Source of the DNA: Amphiscolops sp. MND2022
Taxonomy: Eukaryota
Direction of reading: 5' to 3'
NCBI GenBank assembly: GCA_964187785.1
Contig: OZ076418.1
Coordinates: forward strand, 5,084,001 to 5,148,000
DNA length: 64,000 nt
The notes under the pieces are model-generated. The model worked only from the letters and a program-made list of their open reading frames with translations, had not been told where the DNA came from and did no database searches. Shown here in pieces: positions 5,366 through 64,000 of the stretch; the stretch's first letter is position 1; the number at the start of each line of letters is the position of its first letter. A program made the position numbers and the translations under genes.

Positions 5366-6402
5366 CTGTGTAGCTACAGGGAACTTTCAACTTTCACTTT
5401 GTTTTGAAGCTTTAATTCCCAAATTGAATGTTTCATTTCAAAAACGTTTCCGATTCATTTTACGAATCTTTTGCGTTATCCTGGAAATTGTCTACATGAA
5501 ACTTCTCTTCGAAGTGCAGTTTCTTGTTTGAAGCTTTTGACCCTTTCTTATTTGATATCTTTTTGAGAATGGTAGAATTTTCTCATCAAGCAACGTTGGC
5601 CAGTTTCAAATGATTATTTTCCTTGCTGCCCGATATATAACTTGTCAATCAATAGCGTGTGTTTATTTTGTTTGGGATTTCTGTCATTACTCTTCGATAA
5701 GCTAAGATAGTCAATCTGTGTGAGTTGGATTATCGCCTCTTCTATTCAAAATTTACACACCCTATTGGTTTTCGTTTGTGGAAAATGTAGTTTTTTTGTA
5801 TTTTCCCTTTTTTGACTTGCGTATTTTTTGCTGGTTTTAATAGATGTGAGTTTACTCTTCTTTATTGTTACCTTATAAGACGGTGTTCGTTCTTACTCGT
5901 GTTTCATCAATTTCCGTAAATTTTGAAGTCATTCTTTTTTGATAAATAGCAGAACCCGTTTATTGTCCTTGCTTAACTTGAAAAGGAGGAGTTATTATTT
6001 TATTCATCATTATCGGTTGAAGTGTTTGTAAACTTATAGACCTACCGCTTCTGATGCTTCAATTACAACAAAATGGGATTGAAGATAAAACTAAAATTTC
6101 CAAGTTTAGTGAGCCGAGGATAGAACTGATTGTATGTGGAAAACTCGTCAAAAATCGAAATAAATTCATCAAATACAACTCGTCGAAATTAAAAGTAGGA
6201 AAACTGATCGGAAAAATTAACTAAATTGTCAATTAGGTGCAAACTCTTCTTCAAATGACTAAAGATATTCAAATAGATGTTTTGTAACTCATCAAAAAAG
6301 CGTTTTCACTAATCGATGTGTGATTTTGTTTTCTGCGTGTTTTCTTAGCTTGTATAAGTAATTGAAATGTCTTCATTTCATAGTTTTTAGTGTGATATTT
6401 TT

Positions 6403-6694
6403 GCACATGACGAAGTCAATGTGCATTGCAGTCCAGCTAAGAAAGTTTTTTTTTCCACAATAGCCAACTTCATAATAAGCGCCTTTTAGAGAAAAGCCAA
6501 AACCCCAGAGAGATTCGAACCTGCAGCCTCCCGATTGCGCGGCATAAGTGTTAACCACTGTGCCATAAGGACGTTATTGAATAAAGTTGAACTGTTGAAT
6601 ATATACGCATGCGATTAAAATAATATATATACGCATATTAAAATAATCGTTGTCTTCGTCATGTGTTGCGAAGCACCGCTTCGCCTCTGTGTTT
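6403..6694 (+). mobile_element. HINE-like family D with internal tRNA-like box A/box B module (minus, 6503-6568)
   Basis: 5' GCACATGACGAAG plus its inverted arm, 3' CTTCGTCATGTG, then hairpin GCGAAGC-ACC-GCTTCGC and CTCTGTGTTT; near-identical copy at 44787-45076. Confidence 0.75.
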
Positions 6695-8044
6695 ATAATA
6701 TAGTACAAATCACAAAATTAGTTCTACCCTTGGATACAAGATTTACTGTAAAACTTGCGAGAATTTTCCTTGCTGTATTTTTTCGGCGAGTTGCTTTTCG
6801 ACGAGGCTTTTTTAATTCAGATTGAAAGTTATTCAACGTACATGATAGCCTTTGACTTAAGAAAACTCCGTTTTTAATCAAAAATTGATGAACTTTCAGC
6901 GTCTTGTTTTCCAGAGTCTTTTGAGATACTAGAATAACTTTCCGTTTTACCCATTTTAAAATTCCTAATCTCTCTCTCTCTCTCCCTTTGAAACAATTCC
7001 CACCAGCCGTTTCCTCCAACGGCAAACCCAGCTCCCAAACCCCAGGAGACTTCCCCTATTTCGCTCTTCATGCATACCTACCTGTCAGTTGACCTGTTAC
7101 CTCAAAATCCCGCCAATTACCTTTCCCGCAAACCCACATCACCGCCCCCCCACCCCTGTGTACATTGTTACTCCCATTGTATGAACAGGTATTCCGTGGA
7201 CTATGTGGACATTCATCCACTTTGGTGTGCTCCATTTACATGTACTGTAAAAGGGATAAAATCATCCTCACCAGGTGATTTGTGGGATTACATGCAGTGT
7301 GGAAAGATAGATGGACACGCGGTAGAGTGTATGAATGAATTGCCAACCAGCCAGCCAGCTAGCAATCACGTGACTGAATTTGACGCATAGCCACATGTTG
7401 GTTGCCATGGTGTGTGTGATGGTGGTAATATATTTTACCTACCATGGTCTGTGGAATGTCAAAAGAGTCCCCATTCTGACATTGTTGTTTGCACTGCCGC
7501 TAATTGTCTACATATTCAATCATCCTTTCTTTCATATTGCGTGTAGTCTTTTAGGCGACTATTCGTACGGTTGAATTTATAAAGGAGGTCTGAAACAGCA
7601 GAATCCAATTTACTACATTTACTACAGGGTACATCAGATTATCACTCAGATTGTCACTTCTGAGGAGTTCGATACTGTGTGTTAGAGGGTGTAGGTAGAT
7701 GTCTGAAACGCCAGTCCACTCAGACCGAGTCCTCTTTGAGCGCAATTGTCGAAGAGGGGAGCCTCAATAAATCAACGACGAGCAACATAGTTGCGATACT
7801 TAATTTCCAGACGAGCATTTACTTTGCGATTCAGTCTTTAATTTCATAAATTAGTCCTCCACTTGCCGAGGTTTCCAAATTTATCTTTACGGGACCGCCG
7901 TTACTGACACAGCGAGGAGGCTCTGCAGCTTGCAGCGTATCAAGACCATCTACGGCTATGTTTAAATCATCGCCCTCTTTATTTTCGCTGCGCACGGTCC
8001 ATTTTAGATACGAGAGAACGTTTAGAGAACGACGAAGAGAAAGT

Positions 8045-11194: not shown

Positions 11195-12571
11195 GGAAAG
11201 TGATACTAAACCAGACCGTCATGGCTAACTTTGAGTCTCAATTCGGTGAAATTTTGAAAAATGATGCCAAAATATAGCAATGATTATTGAATTTGTGACG
11301 TCATCAAACAAGAGTAAAAGGAAAATATGATTTCAACAGTTTCGGCTCCTAGTTTTTGTGGGTTTCGATAGGGACCAACATTTACATAAGTCAAGTCCAG
11401 AATTGTGTAATGCATGAAACTTTTGCGCACGACAGAGTTTTTTAGAGTTGCCTCTCAGAGTCGAATTATTTAGAATCGAAAATTGCAACTGAAATTTCCA
11501 GGGTCCAAGTATAAAAGATCGAATTTTACAGGGCATTATAGCAATGGTATAATATGAATGAAATTTTCACTTCTATCGATCCTAGATAAAATCAAGTCAC
11601 AATTCGATCCTGTAAAATTTGGCACATTTTTCGATCATACATAATTCGACTCTGTACAGCAATCCCGTTTGTGTAACCAAGTAGTCAATTTGGATGATAA
11701 ATCATTGCGTACCAATCTATGTATTATCTTGGTTTCTCTTTATTATTCGGGGGCTTATCTACTTTCCTCGACAGTTGTGAAATTTGCAACTAATATGCAT
11801 TGCCAGCATTTCCATGAAAAGGCACACGTCATTTTAGCCAAGAGTGCTATTATGATTTAAACGTTCAACTGTATAAAATGTTTGTCAAGATTCAGAAGGA
11901 CCGACCGTTCACATGTAATCCCCTTGTTTTGTCTTGAAATTCAAGCCAAACCATTTGGGCTTGAAGTCTTGGAAACATTGCAGTGTTAAATTACGTAATA
12001 ATATCCTACAGTAACATTCACTTCGATTGAACGCATGTTCTTGTGAGCTGATAAAATCCTGTTATAATTTATTCAAACCAAGTGAAGTTAACCTTAGCAT
12101 AAATTATGTACTCTTGTCTAGTTATAACCTTTTGGCAAACAGACCATGGTACCAAATCTAAGATAGTTGTACTAACTATCGCTACTGCTACTACTGAATA
12201 CTGAGCCCGAAACTTGTTATTTATAACTAGTAGATATTACTAATGGTTAACTCATAACCGGTTACTCAGACTGTAGAGCAATCACTGTGTGAACCAATCA
12301 TATGATCTTGGCGTCGTCATTCCGATTCATCCCGAAATCTCAGATGTTGCCCAAACTTAGTTTACTCAGTAAAATCGAACTCGTTCTGATTTCTCGGTTT
12401 CCATTCAATCCCACCTCATAATGTACAATGCGTTTGGCGCCCTTTGATGCAGGTTACTTCTCAATTTTGTTCGTTTCTCTTTGAATTTATTTGAGGTTAA
12501 TCTTTTGATGTTTAAAGTTTATTTAATGTACAAGCTTAGTTTCGAAACCAATCGCCCTACTCGGGGTTTAA

Positions 12572-13161
12572 CCTTAACTTGGCCAATGTGCCAAATTTGG
12601 CACATTTTGTTTCTGCAAATTCTTAACGCACCAGCTGATTGTATGGTAAAGCATACCCTTTAATAAGTGTTTCAGACAATATTGCATAGCATTCGGCGCC
12701 TTTTCACGGAAAATTGACGTGATGTCTCAAAAACCCAGAAAATGACGCAAAAAAATCAAAAGAAAAATAAGTGCAGATTTTCCGTTTTCCCAGTTTTCGT
12801 TTGTGCCCCTTTTATCCCACTGGTATCAACATTGGGTCAAAGCGTCCCCAGCATGTTTTGAAACATGTTGAAAAGCAAGCGGAGACACGACGCGTGCAAA
12901 GTTTTGGCGCAAAGTACGGAGCCAGTGCGGCGAAGCCGCACGCCAGCGGAGAACTTCGCGCAAAAAACTTTGCGCGCAAGGGGCCCGCGCTAGCGGGCCC
13001 CAAGCCCGGCAGTTTAAAAATTGATTTGAAAGCCCCAATGCTCCTCTTTCGAACGCTGTATAAATCGTTTGTCGGACTTGTATAGTTCAGGAGATATTGC
13101 GGTTTAAAGTTGAAGCACCTGATTTTTGGACGCAACAAGATTTTTCCTGGCCAACTTAAGG
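12572..13161 (+). mobile_element. piggyBac-type MITE sharing its left end with the Tudor-piggyBac at 61707
   Basis: TTAA-CCTTAACTTGGCCA...TGGCCAACTTAAGG-TTAA; first 33 nt identical to 61707-61739. Confidence 0.85.
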
Positions 13162-14777
13162 TTAAACATTGGTGGCTTTCGAGTTCTGTCGCCATTTTAT
13201 GACTCATTTTATTATTGCAGTGAGACTAACATAAAACCCTGATGTCATTTTGTTTGTTTAAATTATTTATTAATCAAGTACTGAATCCTATACTTTGGAT
13301 TTAGGATAAGCTCTCATTTTAAAGAAATGAAAATGTTGCTGGTCTTGCTCCATATTATGCTGAAACATCCAAGTGAATTGGTGGTTTTTTGGTTGAAACT
13401 ACGCGTTTGTAGCTTCCTGCTTTGAACCAAGGTATACTTCGGCTAGTTTTGTTGGCATCAATTTTCCCCAAGGTTCTCATGAAAAGACCAGTTTTAGAAT
13501 TAGGGAAATACCTTTGGTTGCTTTGGGTTGCTCATCTTGAATGATCGTTAGAAGCCATGGTTGAATTTCGCACTCTGAAATCCGTTGCTTTTTGTCCACT
13601 GTCGTGCAACCGTCGACTTTTATCTTTTCAACACTCCTCTGAAACGAAAAGAAATTTGTTGACAAAAATTCCTTGATTTCTCGAAAATGTTAGATCAGTA
13701 TTATTTAGGACAAATGAGTTTTTTTCTCCTGACTTTCAAGTTTTCTCAATGTTGAGCACGTATGAAGCGTTCTGGATATTTCGGTGTGTTGCTAAAGAGC
13801 ATAATTTTTTCATGGAATCTAGGCTCCAATAGGCCTACATGTATCCCGTATTTTTCCTAAAAACTGGTCATTTTCCATCATAAAAGTCAGTAATTTTCCT
13901 TAAAACAAATGATCGAAGAACCCCACCGTGAAATTTTTCTACGCGTTTTTTCATTAGACCCAAAAAATCATGTTTTTTCTTCCATCTTTTGTATATTTTT
14001 TTTCTGGAATATTCCCAGCCGTTCACGGTAAATGGTTATCCACAAAAGTGTCTTGCATGTTCATGGTCGACCTTGGGAATCTAAGCGAGCAAGGTACGCA
14101 TTGGTAACTGCATGACGAAAGGCTGCATAACATCCTAATGCATTTTGGTGCTTTTCTGCAACGCGTTATCATCGCTTGGCGTTCAATTTGTATTCTGTTT
14201 CTGTTCTAGCTGCTTTTTCGCTGCCTTGCTTTTCACCATGCATTGTGTGTGCATGGGCACTTATTAGAAATCATTCTACCGACAAATTTTGCTATTTTAT
14301 GTGCTGCTATTCACAGTCGTATGGAGTTATGGCAGTCATTGTAAGCGTTCTGCAAGAGTTCAAAAAATATTGTGCTTGCTTATTTTTGAGCTTTGATTGA
14401 GCTCTCACGTCTATTCCCCAAAGAGCGTTCAGTTCATTTATTTTATCTTTTAAAGCCCCTTTTGAACTTTTCGGATCATTTCTTCGTACAGAAACTTTAG
14501 CATAAATTTATTTTGAGATACAAAAAGCTAATTTCGTGAAAGCCGAACCTTTGGCAGAGTTTTCATGTAGTCTAGTTTTCATATTTCCAAGTTGAGCTTC
14601 GGTCTTCAGGATTATTTGAATATTTCAAACTCTTAAAGTTTTTTAAAACTCTTAGTTAGCTTATTTACAGCACAAAGCCTTCCCGTTCAAAATTAGGATG
14701 CTTTCAGATAAAAAACATACAATGTTTCCCTCTTTACCCTGAACGCTGATTATTTTGAGAGAATGGCCAGAATCAAC

Positions 14778-60875: not shown

Positions 60876-61199
60876 ATGCCCTGGAAGACTACAACGAGTC
60901 GTGTGACCCCACAGCCCTCACAGACACGCAGCACTGCTACCCGGAAGTGGACCAGGAGCCAGGCAAGTTCCGGATCCTACTGCTGGCTCGCAACAAGTAC
61001 GGGGCTGCCATGTCCAGTCCCCGCATCTGCAAGGCCACCTGGGCCTCTTCCGGGTTCCTGCAGCCGGAGAGCGAGATGCAGGGCTTCTCCACCGCGGGCG
61101 CCACTCTCATCATGTTCCTCATCCTCCTCATTCTGCTGCTCATCATCCTAGCTCTCATCGCCGTCTACTACACCAAGAACAGGAGTCATAACTACAGAG
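60876..61199 (+). CDS. L1-like exon 16 (FN3-5 C-half, TM helix, juxtamembrane tail)
   Basis: gtttcag| ...KFRILLLARNKYG...TLIMFLILLILLLIILALIAVYY-TKNRSHNYR |gtcagt; phase 1 to 1. Confidence 0.9.
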
Positions 61200-62141
61200 G
61201 TCAGTGCTGCTGCTGCTGCTCAATGAAGAACTTGTCTTTTTTGGTTTTGTGATTTTAGACGGAGACGAACAGCGTTGTAGTATTTTAGAGGAGACACTAA
61301 CAGAGCTGCAGTGTGAGGTTTAGGGAGAGAAGAATTTTTTGACCGTCTGATGGAGGTGTAAATCGAAAAGTGCTTTTCAATTTTATTGCGTAATATGGTA
61401 GACACGGAGTATAGTATAATATGAACTATTATACTAGACACGTACATTGAGGTCTAAACAAAAGTGAACAAGTGAATAAAGTCGTAGTTATATCATCAAT
61501 TGAACTGGAAAAGAGGCGCAGTGGCACTGTGATTTATCGTTCTAAGTTACAAAAAGTTTTCAGAAAAAACACGACAAATACAAACCTCGTATATTTGAAA
61601 AGGAAAAACCAACAGAGTTCTCTCAACTAAAATGTCTCCACGGATCTGAAAATTGGGTCATGCGTATATATAGTAGGGTTCCAGGCAGGGCTAAGCAATC
61701 AATTAACCTTAACTTGGCCAATGTGCCAAATTTGGCACAGCGTGTGAATTGAATTGTGACTGTGAGCATGACGTAATAACCATTCCAATCCAAATTAAAT
61801 CACGAAATCTGATTGGCTGCCGACAGTACGACACAGAGATAAAGTTAATACAATATTGCAGCTTGATTAAAGGCAGCTACTGTTATTACCACATTCAGTC
61901 TGGCATAATGCATTTGTATTAGAAACTTAGAAACATCATATCTCAGCGAATACGTTACAGAAATTGGTCATTCTTTTTTATAATAATTTATACAATGTGT
62001 ACTTTGCTACTGTTAATATTCAGGTGTGCAGTTTTGCCCCATTCTTTCGGAAATTCTCTTGAAAATAGCGTGCCATTTTAGGCACATAAAATAACAACAG
62101 TAAAACGAGATTCTTCTTCATTTTCACGATTTTCAGAAATT

Positions 62142-62318
62142 ATGGTTTTTAACGTCGGAGATCCAGTTGATATCTTCTGGGCTGATGAAACGTGATGGGG
62201 GCATTATTATCCTGGCTCAATCTCGCAGGTTTTAAAAACCGGTTACCAAGTTACTTTTGACAATTATCCTCAAGAATGGAACATGGTTGTCCTTAAAAAG
62301 TACGTGAGAAGAGATGTT
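62142..62318 (+). pseudogene. Tudor/Agenet-like domain at the 5' end of the piggyBac coding region (one in-frame TGA)
   Basis: MVFNVGDPVDIFWADET*WGHYYPGSISQVLKTGYQVTFDNYPQEWNMVVLKKYVR matches by eye the Tudor pattern (W/F)xVGD..W..D...YP..I..V....V.(F/Y)..Y; not in the ORF track. Confidence 0.7.
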
Positions 62319-62326
62319 TGAAATGA

Positions 62327-63817
62327 TTGAATGAGCTTCCACTAGCTATGGAGGTGACCGATGACTCAGATTTGGACATACCACTCAAGGAATCTGCGAG
62401 CAACAAGGCTAACAGAGCGTTTTATGGGCTGAAACTTGGTGAGCAAACAGCAACAGTTACTAGTATTTCATCTTCTGATTCAAGCTATGACAGCGATAAA
62501 GAGAACATTGGGAAGATTTAGTAAACAGATCTCAAGAAGAAAGTGAAGACGACCTCATTCTGCCGAATACCAAGGAACTCAGGTGCCGCAATCGAACGGA
62601 TGCTTTTGACATTCCAGCTGCCTCTGAATATAGAGAAGTGGTTTCGAAAATACGAAAACATTTCGAATGCCTTTCAGATTATCTGACAAGCGACAAGCGA
62701 ATTCCTAGCAAATATTTGCTACAATACAAACCTGTATGCACGACAGCAATCCATCAATGACCCATTTAACCTTGATTCGAAAGAACTTTTAGTTTTCATT
62801 AGAGTTTCAAAATGGACGTCTCTGATCAAATTACCGCCAATGCATATGTATTGGGCGAAAGATACGCGAATACCGCATGTCGCTGACTTTTTGACAAGAA
62901 ATCGATATCAGCAGATCGGAAGTAAATTGCACTTTGCGGATAACGAAAAAAAGACAGATCACAGTCTGAAGGACTTCAAATTCGCAATGATTGGGGAGCA
63001 TTCCAATGACGTGTGTTCAATAATTGAAAAAGACCCTTTCTTATCAATAGACGAACAGATCATACCTTATAAAGAAATAAAATCGTCACTACGGCAATAC
63101 CTACCGAAGAAATCGAAGAAATGGGGCGATAAAGTTTTCGCGCTTTGTGAACAACAATGTGAGGTCAATGGCATCCGACTTGCTGCTGTGTTATGGCATG
63201 ATAACGCGCAGGTTTCATTGCTCAGCTCTTTCGTTGGTGGCCAAATGGTTTATCAGCAACAAAGGTATGACAGGGGAAAGAAACAAAAAATTGTGGACTG
63301 CCCAGTGATTGTAATGGAATACAATAAACATATGGGTTATGTTGATAAATTCAACAGATACATTGCACTTTACCGCTCTGGACAACACTGTGTAACTCGA
63401 CATTACTTGAGATTTTTTCCATTTCATCGATGCGTTCTTCATCAATAGCGGGGTCCTATATAGAAGAGAAGCCGAGGACTCCCAACTTCCGAAAAAAGAC
63501 ACTTTGAGCTTATTTGACTTCTGTTCACGCTTGTGTTCGTGTCTTACAAGTATGACAGGTGATCCTGTTACACCAAGAGGGAGTCTACGAAAAAAAGCGA
63601 CTGAGATGGAAACACCTGTTCGGGTGGCGTCACCATTAATACTGCGAGCAATGCAATCAAGCAACGGTGGTCACTGGCACCTGACAACATCACAGACAAC
63701 GATGCAAGTTACCAGGTTGCAATGCCAAGAGCAGTTTGGTGCAAAAAATGCCAGCGGCACCTCTGTGTAAACTCTCACCGAAACTGTTTTCAGTCATTTC
63801 ATTATCAAAACTTTTGA
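62327..63817 (+). pseudogene. piggyBac (PGBD-type) transposase, frameshifted and internally deleted
   Basis: Acidic N-terminus; TNLYA..Q; KLP..MYW; LSIDEQIIPYK; YLPKKSKKWGDK; WHDN; EYNKHMGYVD; C-terminal RCKLPGC...CKKCQRHLC...NCFQSFH*. The DNYF region is absent between KVFALCE and QQCEVNG. Confidence 0.9.
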
Positions 63818-64000
63818 AGTGAATTGAAAATTTACTTGAAAATAATTTTTTTCTGAAAATTTTGCGAAGAGCCTTCTTTTACCTTTTTTTAGCCAATGTG
63901 CCGTTCTTGGCACACCCTATGAGGAAAAATGAGGTTTCTTTATTTCAATCACTTTCATCCTCAATTTCTTAACTGAAATGAATCGGATTCATCCAAATAG

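Follow-up and report, generated by a model that had tools for sequence, protein, structure and literature searches.

A piggyBac-like transposon family with a predicted Tudor-like domain at the N-terminus of its transposase

A decayed copy and the ends of its family

The window, by which we mean the whole 64-kb stretch of DNA analysed here, ends in an old, dead piggyBac-like copy that is ~94% identical to the youngest copies of its family. All features described below lie on the forward strand. Within the 64-kb window, the coding part of this element occurs once only. An apparent coding exon, rich in GC, lies a short way upstream of the copy. For comparison we used four loci (L001–L004) from a single ENA assembly (ERZ25074608), which represents the same or a sister genome and shares the MITE family of the window. 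These loci were reached by tracing protein fragments of sister copies, such as one of 69 residues, to their contigs. The reading of variant contigs as mere alleles was dropped; distinct loci with identical variants were retrieved.

At its left end, the window copy bears a TTAA target-site duplication (61703–61706). The contig flanks diverge exactly at this position (loose ends at 61703), and similarity to L002, L003 and L004 starts at the identical base. The duplication is followed by the left terminal inverted repeat (61707–61739), which is composed of a 15-bp perfect repeat, CCTTAACTTGGCCAA (61707–61721), and the palindrome GTGCCAAATTTGGCAC (61723–61738). The adjoining 5′ untranslated region (61740–62141) is collinear with L002, L003 and L004 and contains a second GTGCC-N6-GGCAC palindrome at 62070–62085.

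The coding part begins with the remnant of a segment of 57 codons (62142–62312), for which a Tudor-like fold is predicted below. As read in the window, it opens with an ATG (62142–62144) and continues for 17 codons (MVFNVGDPVDIFWADET) to a TGA at 62193–62195, after which 41 codons (WGHYYPGSISQVLKTGYQVTFDNYPQEWNMVVLKKYVRRDV) lead to a TGA at 62319–62321 in the unshifted frame. The next frame contains an acidic stretch (62327–62518), followed by pieces of a piggyBac transposase in changing frames. Lesions were called from an alignment to the near-intact copy L004 as the reference, which revealed 11 in the coding part of the window copy. The segment itself carries the TGA at 62193, where AGA (Arg18; 62193 T>A) stands in contigs from other copies, and has lost 1 nt after 62306. 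The remnant of an acidic, Ser/Asp-rich linker (62313–62660, corresponding to residues ~58–173 of the family protein) shows a TGA at 62324–62326 in the restored frame, where L004 has TCA, and a 1-nt deletion after 62509. The remnant of the transposase core (62661–63721) matches Pfam DDE_Tnp_1_7 at 62762–63445 (E 1.7e-25). Its lesions comprise an insertion of 7 nt at 62685–62691, a deletion of 288 bp after 63148 that takes out the stretch around the second catalytic Asp, deletions of 2, 1 and 3 nt after 63271, 63285 and 63412, respectively, and an insertion of 1 nt at 63689. The remnant of a putative C-terminal cysteine-rich domain (CKKCQRHLCVNSHRNCFQSFH) and the stop codon span 63722–63817, with a 2-nt deletion after 63733 and the stop at 63815–63817.

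An earlier note on this DNA had placed the segment on the inner side of the left terminal inverted repeat, broken by one TGA and separated from the transposase by a −1 shift near 62310–62327 and a second TGA at 62324, in a copy that was similarly decayed elsewhere. This description agrees with the letters of the window to the base, and the alignment to L004 recovers both the missing nucleotide after 62306 and the change of TCA to TGA. The TTAA at 61703 and the repeat starting at 61707 are both 5′ of the segment, and the 11 lesions, including the 288-bp deletion, bear out the decay of the remainder.

The 3′ untranslated and subterminal region (63818–64000) contains a third palindrome at 63898–63913, and the window ends 44 nt short of the right end of the element. 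The motif at 63889–63914 is not a terminal repeat, right or direct, but the internal GTGCC-N6-GGCAC palindrome; the real right repeat is located 44 nt past the window. In the other copies (L001, L002, L003 and L004), the element closes with the left repeat CCTTAACTTGGCCAA in reverse complement, and TTAA comes next. The 15-bp perfect repeat is found at both ends of L002, L003 and L004, and TTAA flanks L002 and L004 on both sides and the window copy and L003 at their left ends. Based on the TTAA flanks and the 15-bp perfect inverted repeats, the element is a typical TTAA-inserting transposon, and in L004 it is complete at 2,626 bp.

Each element carries three GTGCC-N6-GGCAC palindromes, one each beside the left repeat, in the 5′ untranslated region and in the subterminal region on the 3′ side. 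Four are present in the window as a whole, compared with 0.02 expected, and these palindromes are candidate transposase-binding sites. The left terminus is also shared more widely. When public contigs were mapped on 61400–64000, word depth reached 83,000–153,000 at 61703–61739 compared with 50–440 over 61748–64000, and the 33 nt at 61707–61739 are also the end of a hugely abundant MITE. The window itself holds a 599-bp non-autonomous (MITE) relative at 12568–13166, with TTAA on both sides; its left 37 nt are as in the element and its right inverted repeat has diverged. A relative of this MITE with 85% identity is present in the L004 locus (11415–11976).

The segment and the transposase in sister copies

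The segment occupies the identical place in all three copies that retain the 5′ end (L002, L003 and L004), whereas L001 is truncated at its 5′ side at the equivalent of window position 62571 and is uninformative in this respect. In L003, which is 86–93% identical, the segment is present with its start lost and one stop. In L002 (94%), the segment heads an uninterrupted ORF of 264 codons that enters DDE_Tnp_1_7. The L002 copy sits among called ORFs with Pfam matches to UPA, ZU5 and ankyrin repeats.

In L004, an uninterrupted ORF of 531 codons (6001–7596; protein P0155) comprises the segment (residues 1–57), the acidic linker and DDE_Tnp_1_7 (residues 174–510), covering nearly the entire DDE domain. 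The sole lesion of L004 is an eighth T in a T-run (7559–7566) that consists of seven T in L002 and L003, past which the C-terminus, including the putative cysteine-rich domain, is encoded in the next frame; the extra T could be an assembly error, and with seven T the ORF would be intact over ~654 codons. L002 and L004 are 99% identical, but L002 carries a 310-bp deletion, and none of the window copy and L001–L004 is fully intact. In L002, the ATG is preceded at a distance of 13 codons by an in-frame stop, which places the segment at the extreme N-terminus of the protein. A second Met is present at residue 63, at the start of the acidic region, and may be an ancestral start.

P0155 matches DDE_Tnp_1_7 with an E-value of 2.2e-61 and 208 bits (cut-off 22.4), and its D302, D385 and D497 fall in columns that are conserved in 58–61 of 61 relatives. 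We take these residues to correspond to the piggyBac DDD motifs SIDE, DNxF and GGVD. The C-terminal parts of L002 and L004 show the Cys/His pattern CKLPGC...CKKCQRHLC...H...C....H; the sole Pfam support for this cysteine-rich domain is a weak match of the L002 counterpart to Transp_Tc5_C (E 0.0076). By its TTAA, inverted repeats, DDE_Tnp_1_7 domain and catalytic DDD triad, the element is a member of the piggyBac superfamily.

Substitutions in the L004 frame, counted according to Nei-Gojobori, provide a further view of the segment. In comparisons with the young L004 lineage, pN/pS was 0.23–0.32 for the Tudor codons, 0.35–0.51 for the linker and 0.39–0.53 for the core. Between two dead copies, that of the window and L003, the corresponding values were 0.81, 0.82 and 0.85, near-neutral ratios of the kind that decay after insertion predicts. 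The deficit of non-synonymous changes across the whole ORF relative to L004 was significant (Fisher test, p = 0.004 and 3e-5). The Tudor codons alone showed no significant deficit relative to L004 (Fisher p = 0.14 and 0.08), 57 codons being too short for selection to be proved on the segment alone. In the young lineage, purifying selection thus acted on the whole ORF, and the segment resembles the remaining coding sequence.

Taken together, the family transposase is almost certainly a natural fusion of a Tudor-like segment with a piggyBac enzyme. The earlier suggestion that the ancestor was such a fusion is upheld by the single ORFs of L002 (264 aa) and L004 (531 aa). The segment is neither missing from the other copies, being present in L002, L003 and L004, nor a separate non-coding remnant, since it shares one reading frame with the transposase in L002 and L004.

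Outside this genome, our searches for the fusion returned no relative. An exhaustive search of representative proteins with the transposase piece identified piggyBac relatives with identities of 44% at most, and the segment was absent from the 150 nearest piggyBac representatives as judged by phmmer, blastp and a regular expression. The 59-residue read-through, with X in place of the stop, had no match in a word-indexed protein search, and a protein search with residues 1–62 of the L002 ORF returned only the query itself. Metagenome contigs scanned for a Tudor-piggyBac architecture contained none; protein and metagenome-contig searches together yielded no relative with this architecture outside this genome. 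The known distribution so far is one genome.

Predicted fold and aromatic positions of the segment

Sequence searches and fold predictions used natural ORFs or the window read-through with X at the stop. The best Pfam matches of the window read-through and of the L002/L004 sequence were Tudor_3, Agenet and Tudor_5 (E 0.02–0.09). No model of the Pfam Tudor clan reached its gathering score: Tudor_3 scored 15 bits (threshold 25.8), Agenet 14.6 (27) and Tudor_5 13–14.6 (31). Since the three best matches all belong to the Tudor clan, the segment may be a divergent member. The top sequence match in the PDB was the Agenet protein AGDP3 (E 0.02–0.07). Those language-model neighbours that have a family were almost all Tudor, Agenet, Tudor-knot and MBT clusters, with scores of 0.78–0.86, where a score of at least 0.9 is needed to count as more than a lead. 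The sequence evidence for a Tudor domain is therefore weak but one-directional, and the evidence from predicted structure is stronger.

The AlphaFold model of residues 1–64 has a pLDDT of 79 and a pTM of 0.63, obtained from an input alignment of four near-identical family rows with only two of the five models confident. It comprises five strands (residues 8–15, 18–30, 35–39, 48–50 and 55–57). A single-sequence AlphaFold model of the window read-through with X reached a pLDDT of 58 and was excluded from the fold searches. [quoted passage not shown] The Foldseek E-values are only 0.02–0.09, as a barrel of 60 residues would lead one to expect. The best 50 rows returned by VIA-align were all Royal-family domains (Z 9.9–8.1), with the Tudor domains of TDRD3 and SMN superposing at an rmsd of 1.4–2.0 Å (Z 8.1–9.1). 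Matches among AFDB Swiss-Prot models included FXR1/FMR1, PHF20, LIN9 and Pcl, and those among Atlas models SMN_Tudor, Agenet and Tudor-knot.

Based on these comparisons, the segment probably adopts a Tudor-like, five-stranded antiparallel SH3-like barrel. The Tudor-like assignment proposed in the earlier note is thus favoured by predicted structure, with Z up to 9.9 and matches of the model to solved Tudor and Agenet domains, whereas the Pfam profiles all remained below threshold. The sub-threshold Pfam scores, and protein searches that gave no homologue of the segment, would fit an ORF that arose by chance, or a host exon captured once, without a role in the element. We consider this reading very improbable in view of the identical position of the segment in every copy that retains its 5′ end, its in-frame union with the transposase (ORFs of 264 and 531 codons) and the bias of its substitutions towards synonymous changes. 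A confident-enough predicted barrel, with structural neighbours by VIA-align that are all of the Royal family, argues in the same direction.

We next consider the Tudor-like barrel in terms of its possible ligand. Tudor domains hold their ligands in an aromatic cage of three to four residues on the β1–β2 and β3–β4 elements, formed in SMN by W102, Y109, Y127 and Y130 together with N132 (PMC9481570) and in PHF1 by W41, Y47, F65 and F71 (PMC7492083). The cage was mapped by pattern alignment with the sequences of SMN and PHF1, numbered in accordance with these two papers. In this alignment, the family sequence FW13ADETRWGHYY23PGSI...VTF39DNY42PEEW46 has aromatics at all four cage positions, with the first two spaced three residues further apart than in SMN and four further than in PHF1. 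W13, Y23, F39, Y42 and W46 are invariant across the copies. The barrel thus appears to carry a putative four-aromatic cage of W13, Y23, F39 and Y42, with W46 as an alternative; W, Y, F and Y had been named as cage candidates in the earlier note, and their pattern match to the SMN and PHF1 positions and their invariance in the copies agree with that proposal.

The cage also bears on whether the barrel binds methyl marks or nucleic acid. SH3-like nucleic-acid binders are among the structural matches as well, including the C-terminal domain of RSV integrase, ribosomal SH3-like proteins and clusters of rve integrases. By comparison with the C-terminal domain of retroviral integrases, the barrel might therefore be an SH3/KOW-like module that helps the transposase to hold DNA (of the transposon ends or the target) or RNA, and is not a methyl reader. 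The three conserved palindromes per element need a binder, and PWWP domains, and the PHF1 Tudor with its adjoining domains, also contact DNA. However, the integrase superpositions are clearly worse (TM 0.57–0.62, rmsd ~5 Å) than those of Tudor domains (TM 0.73–0.83, 1.5–2 Å), and all four canonical cage positions are aromatic. Known piggyBac transposases bind the transposon ends through a cysteine-rich domain and a dimerisation/DNA-binding domain, and both appear to be present in this family. We regard a nucleic-acid-binding barrel of this type as unlikely.

A methylarginine adaptor of the SMN/TDRD type would leave the methyl-binding function of the cage in place and remove its part in choosing insertion sites. 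Such a barrel could, for example, bind sDMA-marked PIWI or Sm proteins, either to escape the piRNA or RNP machinery or to turn it to the element's own use. SMN/TDRD3-type cages share the F39-x-x-Y42 spacing and the Y-P-x-x-I motif, and TDRD3 and the SMN Tudor are among the best superpositions listed above. The Asn of SMN that bonds the ligand (N132), however, corresponds by pattern alignment to E44 in the family and to Q44 in the window copy, and the methyl-lysine readers UHRF1, PHF1/19 and SGF29 score equally or higher. A role of this kind seems to us rather improbable.

Proposed role and relation to known systems

The explanation that we prefer for the whole of these observations is a piggyBac transposase fused to a Tudor-like barrel, the cage of which binds a methyl mark and thereby biases insertion; we assign it a probability of about 0.6. 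The earlier note had likewise suggested that the domain could steer insertion to methylated chromatin or bind methylarginines of the piRNA pathway. In this model, the cage would bind chromatin proteins at a methylated lysine or arginine, and the barrel would tether the transposase or the transpososome to chromatin so marked. Tethering would in turn bias the TTAA landing sites of the element and of its MITEs, in analogy to the chromodomain-bearing integrases of chromoviruses. For the narrower statement that the barrel is a methyl-mark reader that steers insertion, we would accept slightly less than even odds. A reader at the N-terminus would be consistent with the tolerance of piggyBac transposases for N-terminal fusions (PMC5381638).

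A more far-reaching version holds that this is a still or very recently active animal piggyBac, with a Tudor-type reader that chooses the chromatin for TTAA insertion, and that it drove the MITE burst. Recent activity is possible given the 99% identity between L004 and L002 and the single homopolymer T that is the only lesion of L004. The depth of the family MITE is about a thousand times that of the element itself. We nevertheless consider this extended version doubtful; if correct, it would give the piggyBac type its first natural cut-and-paste DNA transposase guided by a chromatin mark.

The predicted barrel distinguishes the family from canonical piggyBac-like elements. In known elements, such as T. 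ni piggyBac and piggyBat, the N-terminus is poorly conserved and probably disordered and has no folded domain (PMC5381638; PMC9499001). The family described here adds to this architecture a predicted Tudor-like barrel of 57 residues at the extreme N-terminus, and differs also in that its repeats begin with CCTTAAC. A piggyBac superfamily survey makes no mention of Tudor and calls the N-terminus unalignable (PMC5381638).

Reader domains on inserting enzymes are known from other elements. In chromoviruses (Ty3/gypsy, for example, MAGGY), as is proposed for the present family, a Royal-family reader is fused to the inserting enzyme, and the chromodomain directs integration to H3K9-methylated chromatin, as cited in one study (10.1101/2021.11.30.470311). 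Chromoviruses are, however, retrotransposons with a C-terminal chromodomain on the integrase, whereas the present family is a cut-and-paste DNA transposon with a predicted N-terminal Tudor-like barrel, for which targeting is proposed by analogy. Like the present family with its predicted Tudor-like segment, Gypsy-10_Ec32 of Ectocarpus encodes a Tudor domain, and its authors described it in 2025 as the first transposable element reported to carry one (PMC12477816). Gypsy-10_Ec32 is a brown-algal LTR retrotransposon with a C-terminal Tudor, in contrast to the animal piggyBac DNA transposon of the present case.

Within the piggyBac family of enzymes, Tetrahymena Tpb2p binds through its cysteine-rich domain. 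It resembles the proposed system as a piggyBac-family enzyme that is tied to heterochromatin (PMC3861120), and differs in that it is a domesticated host gene with neither transposon ends nor a Tudor domain. PGBD1 (with SCAN) and CSB-PGBD3 demonstrate that piggyBac transposases tolerate N-terminal additions (PMC5381638), and hAT-Chromo fusions in a sponge demonstrate that reader-transposase fusions occur in animals (10.1101/2021.11.30.470311). The PGBD genes are immobile and domesticated and arose by exon capture, whereas the fusion described here lies within the inverted repeats of a mobile element and is present in several copies.

The same survey of fusions between chromatin domains and transposons lists mostly Chromo and PHD domains, and an architecture of TUDOR plus DDE_Tnp_1_7 was not found in the available part of its supplementary tables (10.1101/2021.11.30.470311). 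A full-text search of the literature for piggyBac with Tudor or chromodomain returned nothing closer, and in agreement with the earlier note, which knew of no Tudor-piggyBac, no published one was found in this search. What is new is a reader-domain-bearing transposable element in the piggyBac superfamily, reader-bearing elements as such being already known.

Reader domains on insertion enzymes are the clearest natural cases of transposable elements choosing their landing sites, and so far these are mainly the chromodomains of retroelements. If the proposed role is correct, the reader strategy would extend to a superfamily of cut-and-paste DNA transposons, and nature would have used the tolerance of piggyBac for N-terminal fusions. 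The barrel would represent a small, naturally evolved module with which integration could be biased towards particular chromatin, in a family that is widely used for gene-delivery vectors, and the thousands of MITE insertions that share the ends of the element would be a ready record of its target preference.

A miniature element sharing the ends of the Tudor-piggyBac family

The Tudor-piggyBac family shares its first 37 nt and its terminal 15-bp repeat with a 599-bp MITE, which lies at positions 12568–13166 of the window with a TTAA at each side; a further copy of this MITE is present in L004 (11415–11976), a contig of the main assembly that also carries a copy of the Tudor-piggyBac element. 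Contig word depth was 83,000–153,000 on the shared end versus 50–440 over the remainder of the element (61748–64000), and the MITE is therefore vastly more common than its putative autonomous partner, the Tudor-piggyBac element.

A conserved GTGCC-N6-GGCAC palindrome occurs three times per element: adjoining the left repeat (window 61723–61738; L004 5581), within the 5′ UTR (window 62070–62085; L004 5928) and in the 3′ subterminal region (window 63898–63913; L004 8041). The window contains four occurrences of this motif against 0.02 expected, and we consider these palindromes candidate transposase-binding sites.

Integrity and surroundings of individual copies

The L004 element (2,626 bp) is complete except for one lesion, an eighth T in the T-run at L004 7559–7566. 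The same run comprises seven T in the copies on L002 and L003, and the extra T could reflect a genuine frameshift in this copy or an assembly error within the homopolymer.

Reading the DNA by eye, we observed a GC-rich, coding-like stretch at window positions 60900–61200 that appears to finish in a hydrophobic, transmembrane-like segment (...LILLLIILALIAVYYTKNRSHNYRG). Because this stretch is directly upstream of the element, the window copy may be located inside or beside a host gene. The L002 copy is surrounded by called ORFs with Pfam matches to UPA, ZU5 and ankyrin-repeat.

Distribution and N-terminal composition

An 868-nt contig (L005, ENA ERZ1742291) from a different public metagenome sample carries a copy of the family's transposase with an internal deletion (P0151, 179 aa), which shares 53% identity with the transposase fragment of the window copy by BLASTP and is, by eye, nearer to P0155, the 531-codon ORF of L004. 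The family, or DNA of its host, thus occurs outside the main assembly (ERZ25074608).

The closest full-length relative, P0002 (595 aa, 44% identity), features a Cys/His-rich stretch (CYFTCEVCHAFVCDTHFDTCC) at its N-terminus in place of the Tudor-like barrel, which suggests that N-terminal add-ons differ between related piggyBac lineages.
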